Shown here piece after piece: positions 7,140 to 57,844 of a stretch of DNA of 64,000 nt. A program made the translations under genes and the position numbers. Under the pieces are notes generated by a model. The model searched no databases, had not been told where the DNA came from, and saw nothing but the letters and a program-made list of their open reading frames with translations. Every line of letters starts with the position of its first letter. Position 1 is the first letter of the stretch. The stretch lies in NCBI GenBank assembly GCA_965285935.1, contig OZ260664.1, positions 86,552,001-86,616,000 on the forward strand, in the 5' to 3' direction. The DNA is from Ophelia neglecta. Lineage: Eukaryota.

Positions 7140-7157
7140 AATAGGGTCTTATCTGAG

Positions 7158-19548: not shown

Positions 19549-19653
19549 CTGTACAGACATATATCATTAGCAGTATAATATCAAGAACGTAAAGGGCATA
19601 ACAAACTCCTCCAGCTGCATTCACTGCCATCGCACTTATGTTTTCACAATCTC
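19549..19653 (-). CDS. Gene B exon, TM3
   Basis: tttctttgcag|..|gtcagt, phase 1-1; GDCENISAMAVNAAGGVCYALYVLDIILLMIYVCT. Confidence 0.7.
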
Positions 19654-22600
19654 CTGCAAAGAAATGATAAGGTATTTGGATACTGCATAGTTTTTCAAAT
19701 AAAATTCGATTCGGTGAAAAAGGAATAGCTTCAAAATATTTAACTAATAACAGTTAGTCTTGAAGACATTGTGTCGCTGTATTAAACTATTTTATCTATT
19801 TATTCTCCATAAGTAGAATGTCGCAATGGTTGATTGATAAAGAAAAAGAAGGCTGGTGTAGACCTGTTTTCACTCTCCCTTGCTTAATGTTGAAATAGTC
19901 AACTAACTTGATATAGGAAAATACACGAGTTAAATGCCCACCTTTGGCAATAGCAACTCCATGCAAACAGCCTGCGATTATTACTAAAATGGTGCTACCC
20001 ACGACAGAGACAATGAGAATGGTCCCGGGCTTGCTTTTACCGCCGTCTAAATAAAAAAATAAAATTAAAAAATTAAAACTATGTGAAACCTTATCGACCA
20101 AGGAGTATTGCTGTACCATTATCAAATCCAAACAATTATAGTACAAATTAAGCAGCGTACCGCAATTTCAAGTACGAAGTGTCAGATAACATAAATTCGG
20201 TATATGAGTGGCTTAGTACTATAGCGATCTAAGTGAACCAAAATTGGGTTAACCATTTCTTATTTGAGTTAGTAGTATTAACTGCCTATGGTGGAAAATT
20301 GCTGGCTAATATTTCAATAGGAAATGCTCCATATGTCGAGTAAAAAAAATGGCGACTTTCGAAATGAGTTCAAAAGAGGCCTAAGTGAAATTATGCAAAA
20401 ATGGTCTAAGTTAATGCAAAATGACCATAACGAAACAAAGCAATTTCTTATACAACTCGTATTCTAGAGAAAAGTTCCAGCTCCTTATGTATAGAAAAAT
20501 CATTCCATGGATGCAGTAATGGGTTGTTTTCATAGTTAACAGCTATAGAATGCTTAAGAAATTAAGGGACGCTTTGGTGCAATATGGACTAAGTGAGTTG
20601 AGTGCAATAGTGGACTAAGTGACAATTCCAAAGGATAATCACATTTACAGTAGGCAGATATATTGGCTTCATATAATATAACAAAATTATAATGCTTCTA
20701 ATCCCATATTATTTTTTCATGTAAAATGAATACAATCACAGACATTTAGAATTAATTATATAGGTCTATGATTCCATATTATGAAAGGTATGGTTTAATT
20801 GGCCATTATGAATAATTGAAATGTAAATAAATCGAATTAAATATATATAGCATTCTTAATATAGATCTGTTATTTCAACCACTTTTTATGTGAATTCTTA
20901 TTTTTATAAATATATCATTCACACAAGATATTTTACAATGCAATAAAAATCATGGACATTGTCATTAAAGTTATTTTTGACATTGACTATCAGCTGATTT
21001 TAAACAGGCACTTTATCCTTATTAAACGTTCGACTATACACGAATAAGGTCCATTTTTGGATGGTCATTTCATATTTCATGTACCACTCGCCAAGTCCAG
21101 TTTGTTCTTTTTTTCATTTTGACGATTGGCTAGAGGAATAATTTGTCTTATTTGTAATAATGGGGTAATAAGTGACATTTTCAATTCAAATTTGGTCTAA
21201 TTGACACATTTCTTACAAAAGAAACCAGACATATTGGTGTTCAGAAAGCCATTAACATAATATTATCAGAAATTTTGGTTCTATGTATTTTTGCCGAATG
21301 ACAATAAACTCAGAACTATGCACTTCCGAACAAATATCATGTAAAATCGTTATTTACTTTATTCAGTTACGAGAAAGAGCAGAGTGTTTGATTGAATAAT
21401 TTGAAATTGACAACCATCACCATTCGCAATGTGATTAAAAAAAACTACTGTCAATGAATAATTAGGAGAGCCATATATTTCTAGCTGCAATCAAAACATG
21501 GCACCAAGGTCAGTTTCACAAGAGTCGACTATAAGTAATATGGTCCAGGTATTAGGGAAGTTGCTCCAGTAATCGGCCATCTCAAAATCACTGTGTATAA
21601 TATTTATTATTCCCCTTTTTGAAATGTCGTTCGTAACCTTATGGCTTACTCTCAAATAAGAGTCCCCATTTAAGTTTATATTGCAAGAGTGAAAACCTAT
21701 CACAGCAAAGGCACGCATGATTATTTTATGACAGTACAAATAGTGTTTAAATTCGGATCACCCTGGAGCACATTGCGGTGGTACATAAGGGTAGCCGCGG
21801 TTACACTGGGAGAGTCGTGTTTAAGGTTTACCTCTCTTAAAACGTTTCGTAAGCTATCACGGTCATTCATGCACTGGTCATGCATGACGGGTCATTAGGC
21901 GGGAGCGCAGACTTCGCCCCTTCGAGGATACCGCTCCCATTAGCCAAAACATCGGCACGTCAGTCACGAGGCGTCTGACCACCGGCCCGGAGCTTCTAAA
22001 ACCGTCCTCGTGTCCAGCTCTGTTTTTCGACTTCCTAACCTACCCTGATCTACCTCGTGTACACCCTCGCCCAGATTACAATCACTGTAGTCAACACTGA
22101 GTACTCTTTCCATGCCCTTCTGGCATAGCCCCGGGCGAGCCATTCAGTCTGGTTAAGCCACAAGCTTCCAAACTTCTATCTTTTAAACTCGTGTATACTA
22201 TTTCTTCCACCTCCATGTGTAGGCCATGAATTCAGCCAGAGACTCGTTGGATACTGACCATTTTACAGGTTCGTGCCCTAACACAACTCACAACAAACTC
22301 ACAGACATGGCGCGACCGGTCAGGATTCTTTGAATTATTAAAACAAGCAGCTTGGACTTGATACTGCGGAAATATTCTCCATGCGCATACAGGTTGTTAC
22401 TTTCGTTGGCTACTAGAACTACGATTCAAATCGCGTATGATCTCGTTCATAACTAAGCTTTTCGTCATAAGGCTGGTCATTACTGCTGCTCGCTGGATTG
22501 AAACTGTGCTCCAAGTACATCGTAGGCCTGCCTTCTATATGAATGGACTGCTGCTTTCATGTTCATTGAACTATCGCTATTTTCGACTGACATTAAGCGA

Positions 22601-25600: not shown

Positions 25601-28600
25601 TGGGGTCGTGTGAACAGAATCCTTCAGCTTTCCGCCCAGATTTCAATGGGAAAATACCGACCCTAAAACGGTGAGTAAAATTGTCATTTATAATTTTTGT
25701 ATGAAGAGTTAAGAATTGTAGGGATGACAAACCGTTTTGTCTAGTGGTCATGCCCCCGTATGAACACTATTTCACGTGTTTTGGGGTTTGCTGTTTTGAA
25801 GAGTTACAAGTTTGCTCGAAACACTTGCACCCTCCCGGAATCAAAAGTTGGTCCAAGGAGCGGCTAAATAAAGCTTTATAGTGTTGAGAACGCAAAGATC
25901 GAAAATAATATCTCCCAATTTTCTACACTGCTTAAATCATACCATAGCATGAAATGATACTAAATTTAAACTTTTATATAAATCTAGATTATTCCAGGTA
26001 TAGTTTGTATTTTTACTTACCAATTGTTTCGCTTATTAAAGTCACCTTGCCCTTGAATGCTGCAATCATAATGGCCAAAAGAATAGCATCCGAGAATATA
26101 CTGATCACTTCGAATACTAAAGCAACAATGACAACTGCAGCACAATCTTGGGAAGTATTGACTGGCTCTAAAAAAAAACGTGTGGGAATCAGATGAACAA
26201 TAGTCGGCCCATAAGTTTTATGATTTATGTTGGATGACAACCTTTTAGTGACATTTATTCATACAATATTATAGGAGAATTGACCTATGGCATAAAACTC
26301 TTTGCAACCATGAAATGCATATTTCCAGATGGCAATTAATATATGCTGTGCTACAAAGGGGAATTTAAAAAAAAAATGGCTTAGACAGTTACGTCTTGGT
26401 ATAAACTGTATTATTTCTATGTCTACTGGAGATAAAACTAACGCTTATAATTAAAAAAATCTTTTTTTTTAAATTCATTCATTAAATAGACAGACACACG
26501 TCAATAGGTTTAAATAGTTTACTACAGCATATTTCCTTTGTAAAGTAATGCTGCACTCCCTTTTCGGAAGTGTCTGATAATAAACTATTTTTGCTGCCTT
26601 TCTGCAGTCAATGATCAGCTCATTTTCGTGTAGTTTGCAGAGTGAAGTTTTTCTGGGGTGTGGGTGGGGGGTGGGGGGTTAAAGCCAAATTTAAGATTTT
26701 ATGCAAAGCGATAGCGGAGTGGTATTCTGTTTGCCTTTCCTTAGGAATTGACGGTGCAATAAGTTTAAGTACTAATAAACTTATTTCAAGTATAGTTTGT
26801 TTTATTCCTAACCAGTGAAGTGTCGAAAGGAGAACCTTTTATTAAGGCTGGACTATTTGGTAAAACATTTTCACCTCATTCTGAGGACAATTATGTAAAT
26901 GGGTGGTTTTTTTCTGACGATGGAAATCCCAAACCTTTTTCGACAACAGAAAATATTTCTTTTGAAATAGTAGAATAGCACTAGTCCAGGAGACAAGCCC
27001 CTAAAATTGGGAGAACCGTATAAATGAGTATGGTCAAGGTTTTTTTGACGAAATGATTGCTTCAGGGTGTCCCATTTAAGAATCCGACGGGTGCCACTTT
27101 GGCATGTTTTAGCAATTTGTTTTATAAACATTTTTAGAGAGGACCATCTGATGACCAAAGTTGAAATTGTATTGGAGCAGATTTGAGCCATAGTAAGTTT
27201 ACGATCTCGAGATAATATTATTGTGTCGGACTGTGGCTTTATGGAGGATGTTTCATATCGCACGGTATGTCTTCTGTCGATATCAAAAAAAACAGAATTG
27301 GAATAACTTAATTTATTATCTTACTAGAAATGTTCAACTGCAAGCGCTTCACAGGCCTATTGCACGATTTCTTTTTTATATTCATATAATGATTTGGTTT
27401 TAATCTCACACCAACAGGATTTGTTTAAATGCTTTTAATATACTTTACTATTAAAGATCACTACCTTGGCATCATTTTAAGCCTTTATTGGTGTCTGAGG
27501 AACTATTTTTAGTGGAATGACAATTTAGTTGTCTGGACTGAATTATTTCTAATAGGCCAAAAATTCAATTTCTATAATTTTACTCCTGGAAAAGGTAACT
27601 GAACGCTTTAAACTGATTTAATATGGTTTTCGGGCACAAAGCACCTGTTGAAAGATGCCTAGTTTTTAGTGAAAGAAGGCTCATTAGTTTTTTGCTGACA
27701 AGTAAAACATGTTTGCACATTTCTGCTTGTGGCCGACTGATATACAAGCATGAACAATTCGTACTTCCACATGTAGAAAAAAACATGAAACGCATTATCA
27801 CCCATGCAAATAACACGACGAAACTATATAGTGCATGTGTCATTAGAGCGTTTGATACTATTCATCATATATCAAAATACCATTCATTCGGGATGATTAC
27901 TATGCATGACATTTTTGGAAGATGTAAAAACCTCAAGTTCTTTTCTCTTCGACATCTTGCAAAAACCATTACAAAAATGTAAACTCACAGAAAACTAAGA
28001 ATAAAATTAACACATATTTTACGGGAATAAACAAAAGAAAAAAGAAATACGTAACAAACAAATGTATAGATAATATAGTGTATTTACCAACAGTAACTTT
28101 GAAAGTACCATTAACCAGATTGGAGCCTCCCGGGGGTTCATAGGAGCATGTGTAATATATCACGCCAGCGGCATGATGCAGTGCTGTGATACTACTTGTT
28201 GTGGAATTAAGGTCAGGACGACTGCTGCATGTTTCTACAGAATTGTTCACCTGCAAAATAAACAATAGCAAAATATGATGGTATATATTGATGGTAGACA
28301 CATGGAATCGAGAAAAGTGGACGATGGGATTGGCTTACACTCAAAGGGTCCGGTCCTGTCCAAATTATATTAGGGTCAGGGTAACTACAGTTGACTTGGC
28401 AAGTAAGTTCGAACTGTTCATCAACAGTGACGGTTTTTTCCCAAAATCCATCTGGAGTCGTTACCGTGTCAACAGGTACTGGAAAAGACAAATTTGGAAT
28501 ATTATAATTAATTACTCAGCTGTATGACTACTGTGGTTACTGGTGCCTTTGTACCGGACCAAACCGCTCAAAAGACCACAACTGAACTTTTAAGATCCAT

Positions 28601-31600: not shown

Positions 31601-33882
31601 AGTACCGTGGCTATCTGTCATTTTAAGTTTTACGTGATGAAAGTAAGTTTAGTGATTGCAGAGACTTAAGTTCATCAAATGTGTTACTAACGGTGACAAA
31701 AAATGAATAATAGGTGAATAACAATTTGTAAAAATAATCAATGATAAAACAATGCAACACATATCTATTTACATGAATTGGCATTTACAAAAGCACATTG
31801 TTCATCAACGTAGTCAAGGTTTTAGCGTAGTCTAAATAACTAAATTGACCATGTGTCACGTATTTTAGTCCACGACTGAGAGTCAGCGCTTGAAGATGCC
31901 GAGATATTAGAATTTATCAGTAGAATTAGGTAGTTGAAAGGTAAAAATGAAAGCCTACACTATGAAAGGACGATTGAGGTGGTGTTTGGAATGCTTAGAG
32001 CATGTTCAGGCTAATAGAAAATAATACCTACCCATGCCTTGAAAGATGCATGCAAAATAACCTGTGGAGGGGGGGGGGGGGGGTGGCTAGGGTGAACGCG
32101 TACACAGATATGGGCAATCAATTACTGCATAAAACGGAAATATCGAGGGCAATAAGGGTACTTTTAAAGGCTAATTGCATTGTGATTTTGGGAGGGGGAA
32201 ATCAAACTATATTTTATCCTAATGTTAAATTGCAGATACCACTCATGATAATTATTGCATTGGCCTCTTTCAGAGAAAATAAGAAACCTTTGTATGAATA
32301 TCTAAAAAATATTTCATTTTACTCCTTATATATGTCTAAAAACAACATTGGATACGCGGCAGACAAAGCCAAATAATTAGTGAAGAATGGTCTGTTAAAT
32401 CGGCCCGGATTTATCAGGAACTACCAGCCAAACAGAAATTGCTAACTAGGGTACACCTAGAATGTTCATGGATACCAAACAAGCCAAGCTAATATATTGC
32501 ACGTACCCATTATGAAATATGCTGGTTTGAAGTAAAGATTACCACATCAACCCATGTGTTTTCCCCACTATTCATTAGTAATAAGGAATAAACAGTGAAG
32601 TGGTCTGTGTGGGTAAATAAATGCAAAATTATGTGTTATTTTGTCAACTAAAACAAAGACAGTTTGCTTATCCTACCTCTTAATCCAATCATATGCATTT
32701 GTCTAGAGCCTAACAAATAATATAGCGGCCTACTTCCTCTAAGGTATTCTCTACTCACTGTGGAGGGTGATTTGGACTTATGTACATTTTTAAGTGGTAT
32801 CAAATACAAAACTAATAGGAATCAAATAGCCATAAGTAAGAGCATCGTCTAACAAAACGTGTAAATGATTCTGGTTTTACACTTTTCATGTCAAATGACC
32901 AGTCTTTTAAAGAAAGACAAATTCACACCAGTAACCTAATAAAGCATTTAGGACAGCGGATGGAGAAGGGGGGGTTACTCCCGAGATGTAACTAACAGTG
33001 TTTTTAAAGTAGTATTGTTTATGTCCTCTCTAGCTATGAGTGTTTCCCAATGCTTACCTACATATACTACTAATTACATCAAAACTGTAGACGTCGCCAA
33101 TGAATAGAATATTCTTGCTTGTAAAAATGTCATGATTTCAGAGGCCATATTGGTATTTGGGTCTTTTTCCGTATAACAATAATCAGATTTTGCCTCTTTT
33201 ATGTACTTATCATTACCGTGATATATCATAATAATTGATATGGATTTTGTTTTCAGTGGGTGCTATTACTTACCATACACATCTATGAAGATAGAATCAC
33301 GAACACCGTTCACTTGACAATCCCACTTTCCGCTGTACGTATCATTCCGGTATGCTTGTATGAGAAGGGTGCAGTTTCCCTGTGGATTTCCACATATCGG
33401 AGCTGAAGCACACTCAGCGGCCTTCACGACTTCATGAAGCTGATTTACCGTACATCCAGTAGCAATATTCCTATCATATTAAAACTCATTAAATATCTTA
33501 TAATACTATGAGGATAATTCAACATTTCAAAATATAGCAGACTTAATAGGTGAACATTATGGAAATAATAAATGTGCTGACCAATGGTTCGGTTGAAAGG
33601 TGCGACTATTTGAAAAACTTACGTGGCTAAAGGTGGCTTATACCACACCTTTGAGAAAGGCGTCGAATCAAAACAAGTCAGAAGGAACATGTCTCCCTCC
33701 AGTGGTGTGCTGTCGTTTGTGGTGACTGCCACCGATTCGATCACTGATGAAGAATAAATAGTAATACCTTAAATGCTTTTCATAACAAAAACATTAGTTC
33801 CGACTATTATGGTTGCTCCTAAACGTATATTACCTGGTATCGCGACCAAAATGAGTGCTATTTTAATCATAATGATAAGCAT
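19549..33882 (-). CDS. Gene B: IgSF multipass membrane protein (signal peptide, 2 Ig domains, 3 TM helices); 3' end unresolved
   Basis: Phase-consistent GT-AG exons 33882-33834, 33743-33623, 33470-33274, 28478-28339, 28250-28088, 26167-26021, (23530-23444), 20046-19942, 19653-19549 give an open frame of at least 342 aa. Confidence 0.8.
19942..20046 (-). CDS. Gene B exon, TM2
   Basis: ttttttatttag|..|gtgggc, phase 1-1; GGKSKPGTILIVSVVGSTILVIIAGCLHGVAIAK. Confidence 0.7.
21500..22930 (-). mobile_element. Possible degenerate LINE 5' part (ORF1 and start of endonuclease)
   Basis: HKIIMRAFAVIGFHS..NINLNG.SY..RG resembles the APE N-terminus; KIEV...WLARGYARRAW resembles an ORF1 C-terminus; many stops. 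Confidence 0.4.
23444..23530 (-). CDS. Gene B candidate cytoplasmic exon
   Basis: ttttatattcatag|..|gtaggt, phase 1-1; DAEEQARRTTTSSTSDHDDTIKAVPPKTP. Confidence 0.55.
24516..24659 (+). mobile_element. SINE 3' portion
   Basis: GGTGTTATGTCTGGTGTC..CAGTGAGGCAGCACTATAA..GCACCGTGGCGATATGACC..GTTGAAGGCCACGTAAAA followed by a (CAAAC/CAAC)n tail; resembles MetaSINE-type elements from recall. Confidence 0.6.
26021..26167 (-). CDS. Gene B exon, TM1
   Basis: poly-T tag|..|gtaagt, phase 1-1; EPVNTSQDCAAVVIVALVFEVISIFSDAILLAIMIAAFKGK. Confidence 0.8.
28088..28250 (-). CDS. Gene B exon, Ig domain 2 second half
   Basis: ttttgcag|..|gtaaat, phase 0-1; ...GVIYYTCSYEPPGGSNLVNGTFKVTV. Confidence 0.85.
28339..28478 (-). 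CDS. Gene B exon, Ig domain 2 first half
   Basis: cttttccag|..|gtaagc, phase 1-0; FELTCQVNCSYPDPNIIWTGP. Confidence 0.85.
29290..30870 (+). mobile_element. Old, internally deleted BEL/Pao relic in gene B intron 3
   Basis: FRVTVFLFGATSSP*CANLA (about 30043-30102) and PTRRVILHSVILLFDLL match BEL/Pao RT-region motifs; Gag-like coiled-coil remnant near 29400-29560; limits approximate. Confidence 0.65.
33274..33470 (-). CDS. Gene B exon 3, V-like Ig domain second half
   Basis: tag|..|gtaagt, phase 2-1; NIATGC...AAECASAPICGNPQGNCTLLIQAYRNDTYSGKWDCQVNGVRDSIFIDVY. Confidence 0.85.
33623..33743 (-). CDS. Gene B exon 2, V-like Ig domain first half
   Basis: ttcttcatcag|..|gtaagt, phase 1-2; IESVAVTTNDSTPLEGDMFLLTCFDSTPFSKVWYKPP. 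Confidence 0.85.
33834..33882 (-). CDS. Gene B exon 1, signal peptide
   Basis: MLIIMIKIALILVAIP then CAG|gtaata phase-1 donor. Confidence 0.8.
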
Positions 33883-34092
33883 AGTTCCGTAAACGATAGT
33901 ATCCAATGACTCTCTTCTTCGCAGCTTTATGCTTTGTGGTTTAAAACAGAAGCAATTTGTGCAGTAGCGCTCAGGTAGTCGTGCGCGCCGCTTGTTGCAC
34001 TTTACTGAACCAGCATAAAACGAATAGTGCACACAGAAATATACCCTCGGCGAAACATGATGAAGTGAAGTCATATTAAAATTCCTCTTGAT
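33883..34092. promoter_or_regulatory. Putative bidirectional promoter and 5' UTRs of genes A and B
   Basis: 210 bp between divergent ATGs; short CpG-rich core GTCGTGCGCGCCGC near 33977-33990. Confidence 0.6.
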
Positions 34093-34150
34093 ATGTATAT
34101 GATGAAACACGTGATAACTTGTTTGATATATCTTTTCCATTCAGTTGCAG
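34093..34150 (+). CDS. Gene A exon 1, signal peptide
   Basis: MYMMKHVITCLIYLFHSVA then G|gtaaga. Confidence 0.8.
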
Positions 34151-46100: not shown

Positions 46101-49100
46101 CCGGCCATTGAGTCACTTCAGATATTGTCTTCTTATACATAGTTGCCAGGCATATTTGTTAGCACATTTCTCTGCCGTTCTATATCACGGTGAAATGCTG
46201 CCGACTGAGTATTTAGCTAACACAAAGTATGCCCGTCAAATGTCATCTCAGAGTTCATGGGTGGAGTTAATATCCTGTTTTAAGTATTGATAGTGCGCGT
46301 TTTTCGTATGTGTTGTTTCCTCATGAATCATTCACACTGTGAGAAATTAATTTCTGTTAGATAAACCAGGAGTGGCTTCCCCTCAGACGTCGCCACCAGT
46401 ACTTGTCCACCAGACGGCGACACTTACTTGTCTGATGGTCGGAGGTAATGAGGGAAACCCAGAGTCAAAGTTCAACTGGACCAGGCAGAATGCGCCAGCA
46501 TGGGAAATCTTAAACAACAATGGTAGTGTTCTCTTTCCGGTGCCAGATGTGTCTTGGGATGACGACTACTACTGTGTGCCTTGGAACATACACGGGGCAG
46601 CGCAGAAATCAACGATCACACTTACAGTCAGAGGTGAGACATGGCGGTTGTTTAATAACGAGCCTATATCGTGGCAGGTACTGCACTGGTGAGGATGTAG
46701 GCAAAACACCGGTGTGCAAACGTTTATATTAGTTATTTCCGTAAAGCGAGCCCAAATTTATACAAATTTATGTATGCCAAAAGCCTTCACATTAATTATT
46801 CCCTTGAAAGTAAAAATCGCTGATTATTTTAGCACTGATATTGTCCTCACTCTTTTGACTCCATTGAAACTATTCGGTACATGTTATTTCGTCATTGTTG
46901 CGGCGGCCCTCCCTGACCACTGGCGGTTAATTCTACTCTTCACCCGCTGTTGTGTTGGTCATGACATAACTTTACTTATTGGTTAATATAAGGCTCTGAG
47001 AAATCATTTCTCTTTCCCCGTATGAGTCCCGGAACCTGTACTAGACAATTCTTCAGCGAGGCCCAAACGGCAGAGACTTGATCACAATAACGATATAGAT
47101 AAATAATTGTATTTGTACATTAAAGTTATTAGCCGATATTAACTGATAGATTTGGCTAGAGGTAATTGATGTGCAGTTTCTTGTTTCCTGACCATATTCT
47201 AGATCACTAAATTCGTTAAGTCTATCGGGTATTGACCCCCTTTCATACAGACATCTATCATCCAACCCACTACCAACACATCTTCTAATCTATCCCCTTA
47301 ACCATCCTTTACACAATACACTCCGTCCTACCACATGTAATGGCCCAACTAATCCCTTAACAGACACATGCAAGGCGGATCTCGGCGGGCGGATCAGCGC
47401 ATGAATGTGCCGGGCCGCATATAGCTCCGGATACATTTACCATCGGCCAGTTTAGTGGCCTAAACTGACAACTTCTAGCGATGTAAACGGATTTATCATC
47501 AAATGTGTAATCGAATAATTATTGTAAAATTTGGCTGATTTATTTATTTCTGCCGCGCCTGATCCGAGGCACTTGGTCATACTATGAGATGTTAAAAAGA
47601 ATTATTTTTCGAAAATGTAATAAACCAATCCAGCTGACATGTGCACGACGTTCATGTGTAATTATGTAGTGATGCTATATTAGTGCGGCATATTGGTGAA
47701 AAGTCGTTCATTGTGCGAAACAAGCATGACATTTTCAGGGATTGTACACATTCAAATTTAAACATTTTTTTGAGAGGGAGTTTTCCAATTTTCCCAGGTT
47801 GCCACTGAACGGGAGACGAAGTTCTTAAATAACGCAGTACACTATGGTGACCTATATGGCAACAGAGGAAAGGAAGAAATAAAAAGCTAACAGAACCCGG
47901 TCTCAAGGAATACGCTTCTTACGTTTGACATTTTCATCTGATATGTCATTGGTTGTCATGGGAACGGACACATATTCCAAATTGTCCAGCAAATTTTAAG
48001 TCTGAATTTTAGTGTTGGGTCTGTTTGTTTTTATTTTTTTATATTTTAAGCAGGGAGAGATTACAGACTAGTAGGGCCAAGTAAAGAGCTTTACAACGTG
48101 TCCGAGTTTATGTTCTGATCAGTATACACTTTATTCGTACTCCTTGCAATATTCTTATTGTGGTCAGTCACTTGGACAGATTTTTGAAGTTACTGTAAGC
48201 ACCAATATTTACAATATTAACAAGACTCCTATACAAGTAGATATCAAGAAAACAAATTGAAAAAGGTAATCTAATACAGTCTGATCAATATACACGTTTT
48301 ATTAGGAGAATTGCATAATTGCCGACAGGGCAAGGTTCTTACAATTTGAATTGCCCCCCCCCCCCCCCCCCCCTTCAAGGGAAGTTACCAGGACGGCATG
48401 CAACATTAAACTTACAGAATAATGCTTAATGTATCGCAGAACATAGATATTTAGTCGGTATGGCAATTCTGAAAGAAAGAAAAACATTCTACATTATGCG
48501 ATTCATTTAATACATAAAACAGTATTGGCTCCCTTGTATAGTGTTAAGGTTGTATTTGTATTAATTGCGTATGCCGTTCAGGTTAGAGGGCCAATTAAAT
48601 TGTTTTTCAAAAGTGTTTTGCTGCATCTTTAGAGCGGGTATTATTGCCAACGTTGGTGACCTTGATTGTAGATAATTATGTATGAGATAATCACATTTTG
48701 AAACGAAATATCCTGTTTAGCACTGGGCAGTGAAGGGCAATGATGTTTTCAGTGAATGTGCATGTTTAAGGTGTTAAAGTGCGTAGATAAGCTTCACTTG
48801 CCCAATGGACTACTTCACATTGACTTTGCCCCAGCCCACAATTGCTGGCTCCGAGGCATAGGGAAATGGGTTATTTGCCGTGACCTGAACCTGAATCATC
48901 TGGGTTTAATTTCAGTACCCGCTTACCTACCTTTATCCGATATACCGGCGCCGACCACAACCTTGAAATACACTGAGGACCTGGACCTCGCTTGTGTTGG
49001 GGAGGCGCGGCCGGGAGGTACAGCCACCTGGACCTGGGACTCGGCCTACGACGAGTTGTTTGATCAGAACTCAGTGTCCGTGTCCACGGGAACAAGGGAC

Positions 49101-52100
49101 TTGATAACTCGCACGACCTCCTCGCTGTCTTGGAAAGCTTCAGGAGACAATAGGAAGGCTGCAAACGGGGCGGTTCTTACATGTACTGTGGCTAATGATT
49201 ATGGGAGTAACTCGACTTCTGTCATGTTAACTGTCACGTGTGAGTATATTTAGTAGAGCGGAATGCCTAATAGTTATGAAAAGAACCGGAAAGTCACAAT
49301 GTTTTATCTAATTAAGTAAGTAATGACTACAAACTAGGTTAACATCCCCATCTGAAATTATGAGACTAATTACTGGATTTTCAACTTTATTCTAACTAGA
49401 TGAACCAACAGGGGCTCAAACAATAGGAACAACAACTCCAATTAATGAAATAGGAGAAACTGTGGCACTGCAGTGTGATTTTGATAACGCTCCTTTTAGC
49501 CAGGGAAATCCCTCCGGGCAGTTTAGATGGACTCGACAATATGGAGTCGGAGTCTTAGATGTAAATCAAGGAACTCTGCAGGTCTTACTGAACAGTCTGG
49601 ACGATGATGATGTCTACAGCTGCACTCCATTTAACAGCGTGGGCCAAGGCGCGCCTGCCATTTTCAACGTGACCGTTGCGGGTATTTTAACGCTATGTTA
49701 TATAAACTAACGAAACAAGTAGACAATCGGGTGACCTCTCTCATTCAAATCGATGCTTGGTTAAAGAAATGCTCAGCTATTATTTTGTAAACTGATATTT
49801 AAAAACTATATAAAACATTATTTTTTGTCTTAACAGTTCAAACACAGAACGGCAATCCACAGCTTCCTCAATCAAAGAACCTGTTCTTTACGAACGACCT
49901 GTCCATAGAGTGCACCTTCCAAGGCCGTCCTGCTCCCAGTATAAAGTGGACGTACAGTGGATCCATCGGCCAATACTTCAAACCGGGAATGACTGTTATA
50001 ACTGCCGTGGGGAGTGGTCACGTCACGGAGTACCTCTCCTCAAATCAGCTAGACTGGGACACGGCGAGTGATGAAGAAAGGAAGGCTGCCTCGGGCGTGT
50101 TGACTTGTGAGGGAGACAACGGGTGGGGAGGAGTGATCAACCAGTCAGTCGACCTCAGTATCCAATGTGAGATTAATGCGTAATGGGATTGTTCTCACGT
50201 AATGACTAATTGTTACTTAATATCTTATAAAGTGTACTAGTATCAAAATGTGTTTCACAGATCCCCCTGGCAACCCATCCAGTCTGATATTTAGCCCTGA
50301 CAAGGACGTCTATGCTGGTGACACGGTTACCTCGAACTGCCAGGACTCTGAGGATGGCAATCCTTTTTCCAACGAAACCACCTGGTTTATTAACGACTCG
50401 TATATTACAACAACAAACCCCAAATCCCGATCCTTTGTAATCGGAGATATCAACCAGGTCGGAGCCTACTCATGTTCCATGGTCAACTATCCGGACGTAG
50501 GTAGACAACAGTCTTCAGCGTCTCCGCAGACAAGTTTAGACGTAAAAGGTAGGAGACCGTCATTGATAAAACAAAATTATAATTCGGCGTGTTGATAAAT
50601 GAGTGATTCATGATAGGTTGTTAATATTTTGCGATCAACTTCATCAATGAACAGTATGAATTCGGCAACTTTTTCATATTTCAACGATAAACACATTTTC
50701 AAAGCAGGCGATGTGTTATCATTTCGATGTATGTTTGCTTCTGATTTTTTAATGTTACAATACATTTTCAGTGGCACCCTATTTCACCAAGCCCAGTTCC
50801 TCTGACCCATTATATTTCATGTACAACGCCTCTGGCGTAACAATCACGTGTACCTTAACGGCGAGACCTAACCTCCAGAGCAGTCAGTTAGACTGGCTAA
50901 AAGACAGCGATGATATATCTACTGACAGTCGGTACAGTGTGGACTGGCAAGAGATAACAGACGGTGGGTTCCCTTATGGTATGTCACACGGCTGGACCAG
51001 TACACTCAGATTAGAGAACTTAGAGAGGGAGGTCACCTGTGATAACGTGGCTGACTACGACGGACAATACACGTGTTACGCCACTGACGGTACCAGAAGT
51101 AACACATCCATGGTGACCCCATTAAAAACACAATGCAAGTATTATTGCTTCTTATTACGAAATGGTTGTTGATATCATCGATCATTTTAAGAAATTTATA
51201 AATACGAATAGTTTAAATCTTCATTTAGGAGAGCATATACTGGAAGATTTATCATAATTTGTGTGTACCCCGCACAGATTTGCAGATATGAAACCCATTT
51301 AAAATACGCTTGCTATAATATTTGACTGTTCATTAGACATGACATAAGGCGGCGGGGGGGGGGGGGGGGGGGGCATTTGAACAATTCCGGAGGGGTAAGA
51401 GTAGAGCGGGGGGGGGGGGGTCATACAAAGGATTCTGGAGGTGGTGAGCGTATCGTTCCATAATCGTGTATTTATATTTCCACGATTTGGTACACCCGGT
51501 ACATCTGCAAAAATACAGCAAATGTAAAAGTTTCGCGAAAATATTCCTCGAATAATTCATAAATTATAATACTTTGGTGTATGTTGGAATTTGGTGGATG
51601 TATTTTCCCACCTTTTAGAGGAAAATGGTTCGTTAAAAGTAAAAAAATATATAGATTTCTTTTGACTTCAGTAGGACTTGTTGCTTACGGTATATTATCC
51701 CTAGCGGCTATTTTAGGATAAATCATTGTCACTGTAACCCAGGTAATGTTTTCGAGCATCATTTGTTCTCGATTATCGCGGCTTCCACAAACTTCGGCAA
51801 GATTTCCTGCTCACTTACTTAACTTTGCGGAAGTTCAAACACTTGAGGTCATATGCTCAATAAAGCTAATACATATTGCGATTTATATTATACACCACTT
51901 TCCAGTTTGACAGAATTTCGTGTAATAGTGGAAGATTTTTCTCCAAAATCTGCATAATATATATTTGTATAAAGTATGGCAGATATTGGCAGACTTTTTT
52001 TGGCCGAGCAGGAAAATTCCGTGAAAACCGACTAAGTTTTATTTGAATTATTTATTTTAGATTATCGCCCAAAATAGCAGACCGATCTCAAAAAGTTTTG

Positions 52101-55100
52101 CTCCTTTCTACATCACAAGGTTTGCCTGAATCTGTTGGTGTCTGTAATCAAAAATATGGCAGTCTCTATCAAAATCAAATAATTTTCTGAGACTACAATA
52201 TACCGCCTCAATTAGCCATACTCTGCAAATTGTCTGCAAATGTCTGCCTATTATCTGACGATGGGGGCGCCAAAAACCCAGACATGCCCAGACTCTCTAC
52301 ATATGGCCGGCCTACTTAATAGTACGTGCAATGTGGAGGAAAGGTGTGGGGGTGGGTGTAATTGTTTTATGGGTAAGCGGAGGTATTTTGTACTTTACGT
52401 GCTTAAAATCCTCCAGCCCCCCTCCCCTCACGCGCTCCCCTCCCAAACTCCCAACCTCGCTGGGCATAAATAATAAACACAGGCTGTGGCCTGATATCAT
52501 GGCAATAACTGAACACCTGTACCTCGATGGACTATCTTAATATTTTGTTCCATTCATTTAAGTTTATTCTCTTTATTATTTGTGTATTAATGTGTGATTA
52601 TTTTCAGATCCTGCCCTATGGCTCGAACATCAAGATCAGGTTGTTGCATCGCAGGTTGGTAATAATGCAACGTTGTCTTGTGATGTTTGTCAGGAACCTC
52701 CGGGGACTTTTGAATGGACCTTGCCTGCGTTGTATAGCAATGTTGAAAAAATAGATAATAAGCTAGTCATCACTGATCTTACTGTAGAGCAGTTTGGGAA
52801 CTACACATGTACAGCCTCTAATGTGATAGACAGTACCACGTACTCTCCATCATTTGTGCTAGAGCTGATTCCTGTAGGACCCCCAGGCTCCCCCAGAGAC
52901 CTGGTGGTAGTGGCTTCTACATCTGTCAGTGTCACACTACAGTGGGCGTGTGGTAGTAATAACGGGGTCCCGGGGATGACATTTAACGTGTCCGTGAAGT
53001 TAGCCAACGAACCAGACAACACCTATGTTAATCAACCCCAAACTGTGTCTGGTGAAGATTGTCCTGCTGGCACCAAAGTAGTTCCATATCGAGTTGAACA
53101 TTTGGATGCCGATACAGAGTACAACTTCAGAGTTCTGGCATATAACCAGTATTCATACATGGACAACTTTCAGTCGTACTTGGCGGTACAAGAACAAACT
53201 AAAGGTGGAGTGAACTTTATTTATATAATATGTTATCCATAATATTCATTATCAGGCAGTATGACAAACATTTGACGCATCCATATCAGTCTATGAAACT
53301 TAACAGCAGACCCGTTTTCCTTTATTTTCTTTGGTATAGTGACTCCAAACGTGACGATCATTGATACTCAATTGACTGGATCATACGTAAACATCACATG
53401 GAAGTACCTTCAAGGTGAGGCGTACATTCTCAGATTGTTTTACCAGACACAGGAGTCTCGGAGGAGGAGATCTACAGCTATGTGTGGTGGAACGGGATGG
53501 TTTTACCTAGAAGGAGACATCAATGGAACCGACCCTAAAGATAGAGTAGTATATAGAAATCACACGTTTGACCTGACAGTCACAAATGTGTTCAGTCTTT
53601 GTGCCTATGAGGACCCCACTCTGACTGATAAAGGAATATCCACCGGGGGCAGTGCAGTGGGAGAAGGAGTTGTCGCTCCTGTTCCTGATAACCAATCATC
53701 AAGTCAGTACCGTTAATCATTATACGCTCACTAAATTGAACTTTACCGACTTATGGTATATAGTGCGATGTATGCGAATTTCGCTGCTATGGCATCCTTT
53801 ATCGTTATGTAATATCACACGGTCCCATGATAAGGTGGACTGTACGAGATTCGAGTGATATGTGGTTTATTTTAAAAGTGTCAATCTGTTTAAGAAACAC
53901 CGGACGTCTGACACGCCGGGGCTTCCGCTGTTTTCAGTAAGCCTCGTATGATAGCCCCTGATCGATCATTGGATACAAAACATATATAATGGTGGTGTCC
54001 CCGCGTATGTGAACGAACATGGTGGGGTGAGGGGGCGGGGGGGGGGGTGAGGAGGGTGGGGGGTGAGGTGGGGGGTAGTATGAAAGCAGTGCCTACATCA
54101 GTGCCATACATTCGTTGTCAAACAAGTTAGTTACGAAATTCTTAAACCAGTATAATTTTTGTGTGAGTAATATGTCCTTATAAAACTAACGGGAACAAAA
54201 TTATTAACACGAATTTGGACACCAACACATCTGCTGCCATCCATCGCCGCTCTCGCTTGGAGTTGATTTAAATTTTATGTACTCCTATTTTTCACAGAAA
54301 TACGCATTCACATTAACCGAAATTATTGCTAAGTCATGCTATATTTTTCTGGATTCTCATAAAATACATTTCCTTGTCCATAACAACAAGTGTACGGTCA
54401 CAGAATGTTCTTAAACATTGCGGCTGCACTGGCTGCCGCAACCACCACCATCACAAGCCGTAAAGAATGACACATGGTTGTTTCAAAGCTTTGATCTTTC
54501 CAGATATTGGAGTCATAATGGGAGTTGTATTTGCTGCAATCTTTTTGGTGCTTATCGTGCTGGTCCTTTTGTTTTTAATGAAGAGACGTAGAAGGATGAA
54601 GCGACGTAAGTAATTAGTATTCTCTATAATTTTTGTTTCTTATCGGACCAATTGCGCTGACCAAAAGTGCATTTGTTGAGTATAAGGCTGTTCTCGAACA
54701 GTCATGAAAGGAAGTGTACTAGACTAAACCAATAGGCCCTAACTAGGTATACCATTTGATATATTTGTCATGCGCGAGCTTCTTCTAAAACAATTTAATC
54801 GTTACCCGGATAGTTTTTGTGCATTGGAGGAGAAGATGCTAAGAATTCCAATATCGGAATTTAACCTAGTATAGTAACGGTTTTGGTGATGGCGTATGTG
54901 ATTAAAAATGATCATTACAGAAAAACTTCTGATTGGCTGGACATCTGGTATCAATCTCTACCGTCAATAAGCACTAATTATAGAATAAGTTGAGACTATA
55001 TGTAAAAATACTACCTATCCATCTTTCACGATATTAAAATAAGATCTATTTTGAAAGTACTCCCATGGAAAATGCATAGTTAATGAGTTATTCAATACGT

Positions 55101-57844
55101 TAATAATGCGACCAAAATTGGTCCACGTTGAGAGAGACTCCGTACAGTGCGGCCGGGGAGTTTCAGATTAATACAGTTCACTGCAGTATAGCAACACAAA
55201 ACTCGGTTCGTCCGATGCTTCCGATGTAGCTTCTACTAAATAGATGGCTAGTGAGGCACACTGACTTGCTATTTACATTAAATATGAATAGCTATAAATA
55301 ACGGTGGAAATATTATTAGTTTTTGTCATCTGCTGATTGATGTCGGGCACAACACTGCTCCGAACCATAAATACACAGGTGAAAGTCAATGTGTCTTGTA
55401 AACACTTTTTCAACTATGAACTTATGACGTCAAAGTGTATTAACAGCTTCATTACTTGAAACCTAACTTACAAATTACATGCTGTAAAATATACGTGAAT
55501 CCAAATATAAATTGTTTATTCCAGATGATGATCAAGATCAGTTGCAAAGGTGGGTGGAGCTAAGTGTATCACACGAGACCAATAAATAAGCTCATTGAAA
55601 TACGCTTCTCTGTTTCGTTTCCTGTAAGCAGGTACTACAGTATGAATTGTGTTAGACACTTTTAATTTCTTCCACATGTGTTGCATAAGCAGTGAGACTG
55701 GTGTGGCTGGAAACTCTCACCACATGAAACAGCTTGCTCCAGAAAACCCAGGTGTTCTTTTCTTTGTTTTTTTTTTAGTTAAAAGCAGACGATTTTGCTT
55801 CGTTCATTACTATATTCCATTGTACATAAAAGTGTGAAAAGTAGGCAATCCAAGCCAAATTCAGACAATTTCTATAATATCTTCAAATAATAGAAGACAC
55901 GTATGTTTCTAAAGCTAAAATTGTATGGCCAGTCAGAAAAGTTAATAATATTTTTTCTTTGTAAGGTCTGGAAAGCGAGTCCGAAGCTGATGGAGCCGTA
56001 GGTCAAGGTGGGAAGTATTTATATGTTGTATTATCAATGCAATATTTAGTTGAAATGAGTAAATATAATATGGATACAGCCATCACCATAACAACAACCA
56101 AGCACCCTAGCATTATGGACATATCTATAATCGTGTTGCTTTTTTGTTTCAGCTGTATACGCCCAAGTTGTTAAACCGAACAAATCTGCGAAAAAAGACA
56201 ATGGTAAGGAATATGCTTCTTTCAATAAAAAAAAATCCATTGAAATTCCAGAATCTTTTTCACAATTACATTGAGAATCTTAACGTATGTGTTAACTTTA
56301 AAATATTTTAGCTGGAGTGACAGCGGACGGAAAGAATTCAAATAATGGTGATTAAAAATCTAATTGTTGGTGCTATTACAATGTTTTAGCAATAGACATG
56401 AAAGTTATCAGTTGCGCCAACTTAGTCTCCTCGTTATATTTGTCCGTGTTCACTCTAGTAATATCATCGTCCATGTAGTACGATCAGGAACTCGTGCCAG
56501 TTTCATTCATGCTACTTAAATGTTAAGCATATTTTTCGAAATTGGAGTAGATGCGGAAACAATAAATGTGGGTTGTATGACTGAAAATGAAGCACCGAAA
56601 GATGAATTCATCTCAAGCTGAAGTACTCACGTTATTGAAAACTGCTAGATTGACAGGAGAGCATTCGCGAAAGAGTAATTTCGAGGCTAAGACAAACCAA
56701 CAGAAACATTTTGCTAACAAAGATAATAGAACTCAAATAATACGGATTGCCACCCCAGGAATATACATCAGTTAACAAACACCAGCTACTTCATTTATAG
56801 TTTAATATTGTGATATCCCGTTTCAGTGTTTACTGATATCTACGCCATAGTTGTCCCTGGGAAGAAAAATGGCGAAAAAGGTAGTCTTGATTTTTTTTCC
56901 ACTGTGTTCTTATTTGCCGTTTAAATGATATATACAGGCTTTATATTTAAATTATACAACCATTGTTAAATGCTTGACCAGATACCACCCGTTTTCTAAA
57001 AAAATAAATATTGAATCATTAAATTTTCCAAACGGTTTACGTTCGATATTAATGTTTAAATAATAAGTTTTGTGTTACCTTGGAATTTTGTATAATTTCA
57101 GAAAAGAAACCTCCAAAAGGAAAGCAGAAAGATAAAAGAACAGTTGACAACACGCCACCGATGGGGACATCGGCTATTTATGAGAACACGGAGCTGAAAG
57201 CAAAACCTAAACCTCCACAGGTAAGAGCTTTCTGTTACGCACGTTATTTCAACAGTATGTACTCAGCAGACTACATTCCTAATTGCTGTTTCTGGGAAGC
57301 TGAACTATGCATCAAAACGCAACAAAAGCATTAATATTTGAAATCTTTTAAAAATATTTCATCGTGAAATGTTTGAAACGATACCTTGTCCAGATATCGT
57401 GAATATACTATTTTCAACGCGACTAGTCTTACATGATACCCTCACCAGCTGCAAACTAGCAACGTCAACATATTGTTGACTAGCAAAGTCAACATATTGT
57501 TGACAAGGAGTCTGTTTATGTGGCCATTCCAGTTACCGCTATGGCATTCTAGCAATGTATTTAGCAATTGAAACGTGTAAACACATGTATTTATACCGAC
57601 ACGACATGTCAACTTATTCCAGAACAAAAACCCAGATGGAATAATCTACGCCGAACTCGTGTGGCCAAAGCCAAAGAAGGGACACAAGGATGTGATACAT
57701 CGTAAGGAACCACCTACTATATATGCGACAATCGACTTCACAAAGAAGGCCCCACCAATGCCCGAGGAGCCGGAGAAAGAGGAGGAGGAAGATATTTGGG
57801 ATTATGTGCCCGATGATCTTCTTCCTCCCGATGATGAGGAATGA
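34093..57844 (+). CDS. Gene A: IgSF receptor, 11 Ig + 2 FN3-like + TM + ITIM/ITSM tail (nephrin/Siglec/PECAM-like architecture), about 1612 aa
   Basis: 22 phase-consistent exons: 34093-34150, 34263-34610, 40762-41076, 42319-42585, 42678-42998, 46361-46633, 48916-49239, 49400-49681, 49837-50166, 50261-50548, 50772-51134, 52608-53204, 53340-53702, 54504-54605, 55525-55549, 55693-55751, 55966-56007, 56153-56203, 56312-56347, 56827-56880, 57102-57220, 57623-57844; total 4839 nt. Confidence 0.88.
34263..34610 (+). CDS. Gene A exon 2, N-terminal V-like Ig domain
   Basis: VGDTIRLSC...QWNV...GTLEVDIENKDIREWLC; phase 1-1; 6 Cys. Confidence 0.88.
35400..35940 (-). mobile_element. CR1/L2-group LINE reverse transcriptase fragment
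   Basis: KLQYY...YLCNRKQYFEY, SGVPEGSILGPLLFL, LYADSTNL; stops and frameshifts. Confidence 0.8.
38024..38143 (+). repeat. Dispersed repeat, copy 1 (copy 2 at 40540-40660)
   Basis: Both begin GGTCGAGCGTTGGTCATTTTCCTTG and share TATGA.GAAC.TTCTAGATC..C.AATAATA. Confidence 0.7.
40540..40660 (+). repeat. Dispersed repeat, copy 2
   Basis: Diverged direct copy of 38024-38143. Confidence 0.7.
40762..41076 (+). CDS. Gene A exon 3, Ig domain (CD80-like C2-set)
   Basis: LKCQVQGGAPSPVITWY...LTLTRQDSGLVIYC; phase 1-1. Confidence 0.9.
41560..41700 (-). mobile_element. L2-type LINE fragment
   Basis: MKAHVISVGRSCFRQARLTTQIRGYLTENACKMLLMSVVVSILDYS resembles the L2 post-RT motif. Confidence 0.7.
41905..41970 (+). 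mobile_element. L2-type LINE/SINE 3' tail
   Basis: TGTAATGCGCCCTTGATCACTTCGGTGGAAAGGGCGCTTTATAAAT stem-loop plus AAAT repeats. Confidence 0.55.
42319..42585 (+). CDS. Gene A exon 4, Ig domain
   Basis: LACQANSPWPGNPLPAFTWTR...DKYYCTPGNSEGQG. Confidence 0.9.
42678..42998 (+). CDS. Gene A exon 5, Ig domain
   Basis: VRCGFKGLPAPSV...LEWK...SGQMTCSGNNGVG. Confidence 0.9.
43619..45454 (-). mobile_element. Non-autonomous PIF/Harbinger element (outer)
   Basis: TIR core CCCCAGTCACACAGA at both ends; flanks TTA/TAA; many ACCGAT motifs; minus-strand remnant RRCRRRQR**WTRHWL (about 44890-44940) like a Harbinger transposase N-terminus. Confidence 0.75.
43837..44681. mobile_element. PIF/Harbinger MITE (inner, nested)
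   Basis: TIR TGGCCCAGTCACAA / TGGGCCAGTCACAA (13/14); TTA on both sides; internal CCTCCGAT..ATCGGAGG hairpins. Confidence 0.8.
46361..46633 (+). CDS. Gene A exon 6, Ig domain
   Basis: LTCLMVGGNEGNPESKFNWTR...DDDYYCVPWNIHG. Confidence 0.9.
48916..49239 (+). CDS. Gene A exon 7, Ig domain
   Basis: LACVGEARPGGTATWTW...LSWK...ANGAVLTCTVANDYG. Confidence 0.9.
49400..49681 (+). CDS. Gene A exon 8, Ig domain
   Basis: LQCDF...GNPSGQFRWTR...DDDVYSCTPFNSVGQG. Confidence 0.9.
49837..50166 (+). CDS. Gene A exon 9, Ig domain
   Basis: IECTFQGRPAPSIKW...LDWD...ASGVLTCEGDNGWG. Confidence 0.9.
50261..50548 (+). CDS. Gene A exon 10, Ig domain
   Basis: GDTVTSNC...GNP..ETTWFIN...GAYSCSMVN. Confidence 0.9.
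50772..51134 (+). CDS. Gene A exon 11, Ig domain (GC donor)
   Basis: ITCTLTARP...LDWLKD...STLRLENL...YDGQYTC; ends CAAT|gcaagt. Confidence 0.88.
52608..53204 (+). CDS. Gene A exon 12, Ig domain plus FN3
   Basis: LSCDVCQEPPGTFEW...FGNYTCTASN; PPGSPRDL...SVTLQW...HLDADTEYNFRVLAYNQ. Confidence 0.92.
53340..53702 (+). CDS. Gene A exon 13, divergent FN3-like domain with RRRRS furin-type site
   Basis: VNITWKY...RLFYQTQESRRRRSTA...; phase 1-1. Confidence 0.85.
54504..54605 (+). CDS. Gene A exon 14, transmembrane helix
   Basis: IGVIMGVVFAAIFLVLIVLVLLFLM followed by KRRRRMKR. Confidence 0.92.
55525..57220 (+). CDS. Gene A exons 15-21, short cytoplasmic exons (span includes introns)
   Basis: Seven exons of 25-119 nt join in frame; Tyr motifs AVYAQV, DIYAIV, AIYEN. 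Confidence 0.7.
57455..57502. repeat. 24-bp tandem duplication with internal hairpin
   Basis: ACTAGCAA(C/A)GTCAACATATTGTTG twice; GTCAACA-TAT-TGTTGAC inverted repeat. Confidence 0.8.
57623..57844 (+). CDS. Gene A last coding exon with ITIM and ITSM
   Basis: NKNPDGIIYAELVW...PPTIYATIDF...acidic tail, TGA. Confidence 0.9.
   Translation, partial: NKNPDGIIYAELVWPKPKKGHKDVIHRKEPPTIYATIDFTKKAPPMPEEPEKEEEEDIWDYVPDDLLPPDDEE

Follow-up and report, generated by a model that had tools for sequence, protein, structure and literature searches.

The paired immunoglobulin (Ig) genes of the tunicate Botryllus include: (i) the fester family (FF), type I proteins with Ig and Sushi domains, three membrane spans and a short tail that lacks a signalling motif, and (ii) the proposed FF co-receptors (FcoR), type I Ig proteins with an Ig-Sushi-Ig-Ig ectodomain (three Ig, one Sushi), one span and a tail carrying either an ITIM (immunoreceptor tyrosine-based inhibitory motif) or a hemITAM (the hemi form of an immunoreceptor tyrosine-based activation motif) (PMC12582321). 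FF and FcoR genes lie head-to-head, are coexpressed and have been duplicated as pairs; the exon count of the first Ig domain is unequal between the two partners (1 vs 3), diversification proceeds by recombination between ectodomain and tail, and one further cluster has co-receptors alone (PMC12582321). The pair is read as a cis heterodimer, with joint action proposed but not yet proven, and no genes are reported to be common to the allorecognition and immune-type receptor systems of different invertebrate phyla (PMC12582321). A 64,000-nt stretch of the genome of Ophelia neglecta (C7:86552001-86616000, hereafter the window; positions are window coordinates unless prefixed C7) carries a head-to-head pair of Ig superfamily (IgSF) genes of comparable design: on the minus strand a small gene (the partner) predicted to encode two Ig domains on a three-span anchor, and on the plus strand a long receptor gene with a predicted tail that bears an ITIM and an immunoreceptor tyrosine-based switch motif (ITSM). 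Judged by architecture, the Botryllus FF/FcoR pairs are the closest known system to this locus, closer than the CD47/SIRP-alpha and Ciona Themis pairs that an earlier sequence-only reading of the window had offered, next to Botryllus fester, as analogies.

The two genes start back to back. The minus gene opens with CAT at 33880-33882 (ATG on the minus strand) and the plus gene with ATG at 34093, which leaves exactly 210 bases between both start codons, and translation from either ATG begins in a hydrophobic signal-peptide exon with a phase-1 GT donor at its end. The minus-gene model (33882-19549) comprises 8 exons and ~342 aa or more; its splice sites are canonical (AG/GT), its intron phases match and it has no stop. 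The exon chain of the plus gene was assembled on the basis of open frames, splice consensus sites and intron phases. The plus-gene model (34093-57844) comprises 16 exons, ~4,563 coding bases and ~1,520 aa, with zero in-frame stops, AG at every acceptor and GT at every donor but one. As predicted gene models both are intact, and the sequence-only reading holds in its description of two divergent, apparently intact Ig genes with ATGs 210 bp apart, one a long receptor with inhibitory motifs and the other a short multipass protein without a signalling motif in the exons found. The junction is not a local misassembly, as an independently built contig spans 30301-34507 with zero differences to the window, although the public DNA run behind it stems from the same sample. 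The inter-ATG region (210 bp, 33883..34092) aligns with three paralogous copies of the pair at a second locus (locus A), including a GC-rich core (GCGC...GCGCGC) at ~33965-33992 that is aligned in all three, and the ATG-ATG spacing is ~240 bp in those copies. This region is a candidate shared bidirectional promoter and is predicted to act as such for both genes.

The pair recurs elsewhere on C7. All searches and folds were run exon by exon; the N-terminal domain (D1) of the minus gene, its second Ig domain (Ig2) and its three-span region were entered as separate exons. Locus A (C7 85.73 Mb) consists of three copies 122 kb apart with 90-94% DNA identity. The partner strand has a signal exon, a two-exon D1 and Ig2, the receptor strand has a signal exon, a one-exon D1 and domains D2-D5, and the proteins are 52-73% identical to those of the window, with the tight cassette retained at 52-65% protein identity. 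The intron inside the partner D1 is 144 bp in the window versus 1.3 kb at locus A; thus, it is the exons that are conserved, not a block of DNA. At locus B (C7 86.876-86.961 Mb) the partner gene is complete: D1 (a first-half-like open reading frame (ORF) at 86905180-86905341 and the second half at 86899674-874), Ig2 and all three hydrophobic exons follow in the same order. The hydrophobic exons are 50-58% identical to those of the window, share their splice positions and keep the Asp, LHGVA and LDIILLM residues. The locus B partner is divergent to a long receptor with a tail 95% identical to that of the window, and at least 24 kb with transposon ORFs now separates the two genes. This gap includes a 308-aa open frame on the minus strand (C7:86907097-86908020), a putative transposon frame.

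A search with the locus B D1 exon yielded five further partner-type exons. For each of the 10 partner-type D1 exons of the genome, the receptor D2 exon closest to it sits upstream and on the other strand; the two are 4.6-7.5 kb apart at eight loci, 14 kb apart at locus C and 30 kb apart at locus B (loci C and g-j being match coordinates only). Random placement would give the divergent configuration at ~17% per locus, and the partner-type lineages are only 37-57% identical in this exon. As the loci descend from one another by duplication, the count reflects a layout that outlasted each duplication that can be detected, and not ten separate origins. On these comparisons the pair has been kept and duplicated together, which establishes the linkage step of the proposal; a genome search for repeated head-to-head pairs had been suggested as a check, and it returned a fully divergent set with a tight cassette at locus A.

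Both members of the pair are under constraint. Uncorrected comparisons of the window with old paralogs give pN/pS values of 0.28-0.63 for nearly every exon in the two genes; the inner domains of the receptor have 0.28-0.41, and two of the partner's hydrophobic exons have 0.39-0.55. The N-terminal domains of both proteins stand at ~0.6 versus 0.3-0.4 for other domains and, thus, both membrane-distal domains change faster. The first half of Ig2 is 37% identical between the window and locus B (pN/pS 0.87). Comparison of the three recent locus A copies gives dN/dS of 0.3-0.5 for both the receptor D1 and the first partner D1 exon, and of 0.8-0.9 for the second partner D1 exon, where one pair of copies has 12.5 non-synonymous versus 0.5 synonymous differences. 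These counts are too small for a call of positive selection (the hand estimate is not significant). Both reading frames are open and constrained. The receptors also differ in history along their length. The 3' end of the receptor, comprising the second FN3 domain, the span and the tail, is 88-97% identical in protein between the window (53340-57844) and locus B (C7:86957168-86961349), with pS of 0.02-0.22, while synonymous sites of the Ig domains are saturated (pS ~0.5-0.6). The last tail exon is also 95% identical at a third gene (C7:86339406-86339666, at 86.339 Mb). With a 3' end that is nearly identical at synonymous sites and Ig domains that are saturated, the genes are mosaics formed by recombination or conversion, and the sequence pattern points to recent gene conversion or exchange of the 3' ends among receptors.

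The minus gene (all exons on the minus strand) starts with a signal-peptide exon (exon 1, 33834..33882) that is supported by the exon model and the locus A alignment and ends in a phase-1 donor. Its D1 is split over two exons. Exon 2 (33623..33743) encodes the first half of a V-like domain with the B-strand Cys and C-strand Trp, ends in a GTAAGT donor and is 62-64% identical to the locus A copies, and exon 3 (33274..33470) encodes the second half with NCTLLI, W.C and four extra Cys, and is one of 10 such exons in the genome. This D1 shows the Cys/Trp/Cys pattern of a V-like domain, together with the four additional Cys, and has no Pfam match. By contrast, Ig2 does match Ig families of Pfam; it is encoded by exon 4 (28339..28478, first half, Pfam and the locus B paralog) and, after an 88-bp intron, exon 5 (28088..28250, second half with YYTC, exon model and the locus B paralog). 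No exon of the minus or the plus gene has a Sushi match in Pfam. The interval 32300-32499 has a contig depth of several hundred and many loose ends in all three DNA runs and is a high-copy repeat within the first long intron of the minus gene.

The three hydrophobic exons were identified by Kyte-Doolittle hydrophobicity in 19-residue windows (KD19, maxima 2.2-2.7) and by comparison with the locus B paralog. Exon 6 (26021..26167) encodes a segment with a conserved intramembrane Asp followed by a basic loop, exon 7 (19942..20046) a segment with the conserved LHGVA, and exon 8 (19549..19653) a segment with the conserved GGVCY..LDIILLM and a donor-like end; a conserved Asp, His and Asp sit within segments 1, 2 and 3, respectively. 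Positive charge is concentrated in the loop behind segment 1, and this net charge fits a three-span topology with the N-terminus outside, which is the topology predicted for the protein. No tyrosine motif was detected in the minus-gene exons found. The earlier placement of the end of the gene at 19549 stands as the boundary of exon 8 but may not be the end of the gene: the site is a good splice-donor-like site, with a GC-donor consensus in the locus B paralog and, thus, the gene may continue past it. If 19549 is read through, the frame stops at 19525-19523, eight codons later. Searches for further coding exons below 19549 (tblastx and blastn against the locus B paralog) gave only a non-coding-like block (14692..16210), which is 65-69% identical to a block downstream of the paralog. 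Conservation of this block is on a par with that of the coding exons; no conserved reading frame was found in it and no further copy in the 264 kb compared, and it may be a 3' untranslated region or a regulatory element. It is split by a 775-bp insert (15060-15834) with 80-bp inverted repeats (15060-15139 and 15755-15834, 91% identical) that looks like a miniature inverted-repeat transposable element.

The predicted product of the plus gene (all exons on the plus strand) is composed of a V-set domain and about ten further Ig domains, a pair of FN3 domains, a single membrane span and a tail that bears ITIM and ITSM. Exon 1 (34093..34150) is the signal-peptide exon with a phase-1 GT donor, and the ATG of the paralogs aligns with its third ATG at 34102. 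The V-set D1 is encoded by a single exon (exon 2, 34263..34610), has no Pfam match and contains the canonical Cys pair and four additional Cys that are invariant in an alignment of eight paralogs. An AlphaFold model built from this alignment is a V-set sandwich (pLDDT 81.5, pTM 0.73), and the nearest solved folds by Foldseek are D1 of PVR/CD155, MPZL1, nectin-2 and VHH domains. The domains that follow are D2 (exon 3, 40762..41076), which is of the C2-set_2 type (Pfam PF08205, E=2.6e-8) and present in 32 copies on C7, D3 (exon 4, 42319..42585), D4 (exon 5, 42678..42998), D5 (exon 6, 46370..46633), D6 (exon 7, 48916..49239), D7 (exon 8, 49400..49681), D8 (exon 9, 49837..50166), an Ig-like D9 (exon 10, 50261..50548) and D10 (exon 11, 50772..51134). 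Besides the exon model, D3, D5, D7 and D8 are supported by Pfam and D4, D6 and D9 by paralog comparison, while D10 rests on Pfam and a splice check. Exon 12 (52608..53204) encodes D11 and the first FN3 domain (Pfam Ig_3 E=9.8e-10 and fn3 E=1.5e-7), and exon 13 (53340..53702) a second FN3-like domain that has no Pfam match, is 88% identical in the locus B paralog and ends in a weak donor. Pfam assigns Ig families (Ig_2, Ig_3, C2-set_2 and I-set) to most plus exons, and the Ig folds have the B-strand Cys, C-strand Trp and F-strand Cys that define the superfamily. The internal ectodomain exons are flanked on both sides by phase-1 introns, as is usual for Ig genes. The sole non-canonical donor is the GC (T|GCAAGT) after exon 11 at 51134-51136, where other Ig exons of the gene show T|GTAAGT and the locus B paralog has a GT nearby.

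The membrane span of the receptor is encoded by exon 14 (54504..54605), with a KD19 of 3.51 and no charged residue within the span, and is followed by KRRRRMKRR. Exon 15 (57102..57220) adds a tail segment with YENT that is 95% identical in the locus B paralog, and exon 16 (57623..57844) carries, by the exon model and a tail alignment, the ITIM IIYAEL (57641..57658), the ITSM TIYATI (57716..57733), an acidic DIWDYVPDD and the stop codon. Both motifs, located by pattern match and tail alignment, conform to the definitions (S/I/V/L)xYxx(I/V/L) and TxYxx(V/I) and follow the single span. The two tyrosines are 25 residues apart, a spacing that is fixed across the aligned paralogs. TIYATI and its flanks are invariant in 8 of 8 aligned paralogous tail exons, and the ITIM pattern [IL][IV]Y[AV][ED]L occurs in all seven tail paralogs whose match covers this part. 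With these two motifs at this spacing, the plus gene is predicted to encode a type I signalling receptor of the inhibitory type, and the description of a long receptor with inhibitory motifs is borne out by motifs that are conserved in paralogs.

The window pair belongs to a receptor cluster on C7 (85.10-86.93 Mb, ~1.8 Mb) that was found by searches of the animal's own genome. The cluster counts 32 D2-type exons, 25 D1-type exons and 11 ITIM/ITSM tail exons, numbers that suggest ~30 receptor genes, and it is a lineage-specific, tandemly expanded IgSF receptor family. Outside the genome, an exhaustive HMMER scan of 1.84 billion representative proteins with the plus D1 gave two marginal matches and nothing convincing. 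Searches for homologous proteins with the minus D1 exon and the tail exon found none, a result that may reflect library content and the length window. An Atlas feature search with the tail exon returned a mollusc-dominated cluster at 0.92 as its best match, which is a lead only, and the same search with the first hydrophobic exon of the minus gene returned no usable match. Single exons find their best PDB sequence matches in contactin, Robo, neurofascin, SYG-2/nephrin and titin (E of 1e-13 to 1e-15). Matches of single exons to contactin, Robo, titin, FCRL5, SYG-2 and CEACAM are generic Ig/FN3 similarity. It had been named as an outcome that would undo the proposal if both genes were low-polymorphism orthologs of known neural adhesion genes; for the plus gene such orthology is rejected on these grounds, the likeness being one of single domains. 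A common origin of both N-terminal domains, for example by inverted duplication, is also rejected, as BLASTP and hhalign align the minus D1 and the plus D1 over the last Ig strands (F-G) and nothing beyond them. A complex prediction with the plus D1 and the two minus-D1 exon pieces as separate chains scored 0.28 versus a mark of 0.34, which speaks neither for nor against binding. At four mirror-image loci of the cluster (C7 85.17, 85.29, 85.52 and 85.65 Mb), recorded as match coordinates only, there is an apparent three-gene unit: a receptor D2 exon on the minus strand is joined at 5.7-6.9 kb by a partner-type gene on the plus strand, and the third member, likewise on the plus strand, is a D1-type receptor with an ITIM/ITSM tail.

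The favoured explanation, held tentatively and at somewhat less than an even chance, is that both genes form one co-expressed receptor unit. Both would be transcribed from the shared bidirectional promoter in the same cells, and both proteins would act as one receptor, in which the motif-less multi-span Ig protein may help to bind ligand or to assemble the unit at the surface, and ITIM/ITSM signalling with SHP recruitment may come from the long receptor, as its motifs suggest. This mechanism is modelled on the proposal for the Botryllus FF and FcoR proteins, and their standing as the closest system favours a receptor/co-receptor reading over a receptor/ligand reading. Several findings weigh against it. 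About 20 of the ~30 cluster receptor genes have no detectable partner, including those with the two receptor D1 exons nearest to that of the window (at 86.726 Mb and, with a stop in the exon, at 86.822 Mb); the 1.5 kb upstream of each of six D1-type exons other than that of the window (these two and four more distant ones) contain no partner exon, and genome-wide searches place no partner-type exon near the six. The four mirror-image loci have no D1-type exon beside D2. The three-span anchor is limited to two copies, the window and locus B, and the locus A partner has a single span that ends in KKKKTK and a stop codon; in the locus A receptor, five Ig domains are joined to a span, and no ITIM/ITSM exon was found. 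The receptor span offers no basic residue to pair with the buried Asp residues of the partner, and neither the N-terminal domains nor the tail have a homolog outside the genome in the libraries searched. The public sequencing runs for the stretch number three, from one sample, none recorded as RNA. In addition, copies A1 and A3 of locus A share 98-99% identity over the stretch that runs from the promoter into the receptor and 82-94% on the partner side, with a break at the promoter. With this recombination or conversion break between the genes, the pairs are not locked haplotypes and the halves are separable by exchange. The claim of co-inheritance thus stands insofar as the genes were kept and duplicated as a pair, and falls as to locked haplotypes; likewise, of the proposed co-regulated pair for self/non-self discrimination, the linkage of two constrained genes holds, co-regulation and a self/non-self role are hypothetical, and the partnerless receptors and the separable halves qualify the pairing.

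The principal alternative, unlikely but of real weight, is that no functional coupling exists: the two genes would sit side by side through descent within an IgSF cluster that evolves by birth and death, a divergent layout of the ancestor having passed through segmental duplications without being split, and each protein would act alone (e.g., in adhesion). Duplication copies an arrangement for free, the locus A copies are a recent segmental triplication with a spacing of 122 kb, most cluster receptors lack a partner, the gene-conversion breaks fall between the two genes, and the membrane anchors and tails of both partners vary between lineages. What such neighbourhood accounts for less readily is that all ten partner-type exons stay divergent across lineages of 37-57% identity, that the ATG spacing of 210-240 bp and the GC-rich core are kept while introns changed size severalfold, and that both reading frames are open and constrained. 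A second alternative concerns the minus gene itself, which may not work as a 2-Ig/3-TM (transmembrane) gene and may instead be a decaying relic or hold alternative cassette exons that give single-span proteins. All three of its hydrophobic exons are symmetric (phase 1-1; 147, 105 and 105 nt), such that skipping any of them keeps the frame and, thus, isoforms with fewer spans are possible. Exons 6 and 8 are alike (DC...D[AI]ILL[AM]I), as duplicated alternative exons are, the first half of Ig2 is poorly conserved at locus B, the locus A partners are single-span, and none of the public runs is recorded as RNA. This explanation is nonetheless improbable, given 8 exons with zero stops or broken splice sites, a locus B paralog that keeps the three hydrophobic exons with their order, splice sites and Asp/His/Asp under constraint (pN/pS 0.39-0.55), and a basic loop after segment 1 that fits the three-span topology.

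Two further explanations concern what the pair would recognize. The small multi-span Ig protein may be a surface marker that is read in trans by the inhibitory receptor on another cell, as suggested by an architecture like that of CD47/SIRP-alpha (a motif-less Ig head on a multi-span anchor versus an ITIM receptor) and by the faster change of both N-terminal domains. A trans pair is quite unlikely, however: the minus gene is not of the CD47 family, a shared promoter would place ligand and inhibitory receptor on the same cells, and FF/FcoR, the closest head-to-head system, is interpreted as a cis heterodimer. Copies A1 and A3 also have nearly the same receptor D1 while their partner D1 halves differ at ~12 of 69 residues, which is not a lock-and-key pattern. 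A polymorphic self/non-self module, for allorecognition or gamete recognition, overlaps with the co-receptor reading and would draw on an architecture and pairwise evolution that match the Botryllus allorecognition receptors, on the position of the pair in a large, diversifying cluster and on the raised dN/dS in the second half of the partner D1 among recent copies (the difference in counts not being significant). The single contig of one individual across 30301-34507 shows no difference and no second haplotype, which is weak evidence against polymorphism as contigs can hide or drop variants, and no IgSF-based allorecognition system in annelids was found in the literature searched. Such a module is improbable, perhaps very much so. 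The co-receptor reading also has a wider form, in which the locus is a counterpart of the FF/FcoR heterodimeric design outside tunicates, whether independent or ancestral, that would be used in polymorphic self/non-self or conspecific recognition; this is a long shot.

Apart from the gene pair, the window contains a BEL/Pao-type long terminal repeat (LTR) retrotransposon on the plus strand (5016-10301), in which two long open frames encode 707 and 1047 aa and give Pfam matches to DUF1759, Pao peptidase A17, reverse transcriptase, an integrase zinc-binding domain and DUF5641. The element lies ~9 kb past the last modelled exon of the minus gene.

If the co-receptor reading is correct, a two-gene design in which a motif-less multi-span Ig protein stands back to back with an ITIM-bearing Ig receptor, and is duplicated together with it, would occur in a second, unrelated lineage and could be tested as a recurrent solution and not a tunicate oddity. 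Lophotrochozoan immunology would also gain a candidate inhibitory receptor family of ~30 genes with a tail layout like that of PD-1 and PECAM-1. If the functions of the two genes are unrelated, the locus is still a clear case of a divergent gene pair that survived many duplications in a receptor cluster.

The tails of PD-1 (TEYATI) and PECAM-1 have an ITIM and an ITSM and bind the tandem SH2 domains of SHP-type phosphatases (SHP-2). The receptor of the window shares with them the order of ITIM then ITSM and the ~25 residues between tyrosines, but has no sequence relation to them outside the motifs, and its ectodomain is unrelated in size and makeup. The likeness to CD47/SIRP-alpha is that of a motif-less Ig head on a multi-span anchor that faces an ITIM receptor with an N-terminal V-set domain. 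The minus protein differs in having two Ig domains and three spans, where CD47 has one Ig domain and five spans, and to our knowledge CD47 and SIRPA are not neighbours that share a promoter. Membership of the minus gene in the CD47 family is rejected, as none of its exons has a CD47 Pfam match and its spans number three, not five; the only V-set_CD47 match is sub-threshold and falls in plus exon 11. The cluster at large resembles the KIR, LILR, SIRP and CD300 families and Hydractinia Alr in its tandem birth-and-death history, its faster-changing membrane-distal domains, and its long-tailed ITIM forms beside short forms with charged membrane residues. It differs in that the short form of the window has three spans, is divergently transcribed and is not a truncated copy of its long neighbour.

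The likeness to Botryllus FF/FcoR extends further, to an Ig protein with three predicted spans and no motif in the exons found and a one-span multi-Ig ITIM protein that are arranged head-to-head and duplicated as pairs, to mosaic histories of ectodomain and tail, and to unequal exon numbers for the first Ig domain (1 vs 2 in the window pair). Every genomic feature set out above for the Botryllus pairs is matched in the cluster. The differences are also clear: where FF combines Ig and Sushi, two Ig domains without a Sushi match make up the ectodomain of the minus gene, the window receptor has ~11 Ig and two FN3 domains, no Sushi and five times the length of FcoR, its tail combines ITIM and ITSM where that of FcoR has ITIM or hemITAM, only two copies carry three spans, and the animal is not a tunicate. 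Without a Sushi domain, with a receptor five times longer, and with a likeness judged from architecture, the locus does not appear to belong to the FF/FcoR system. It would instead work like FF/FcoR, in a resemblance of design that is possibly convergent.

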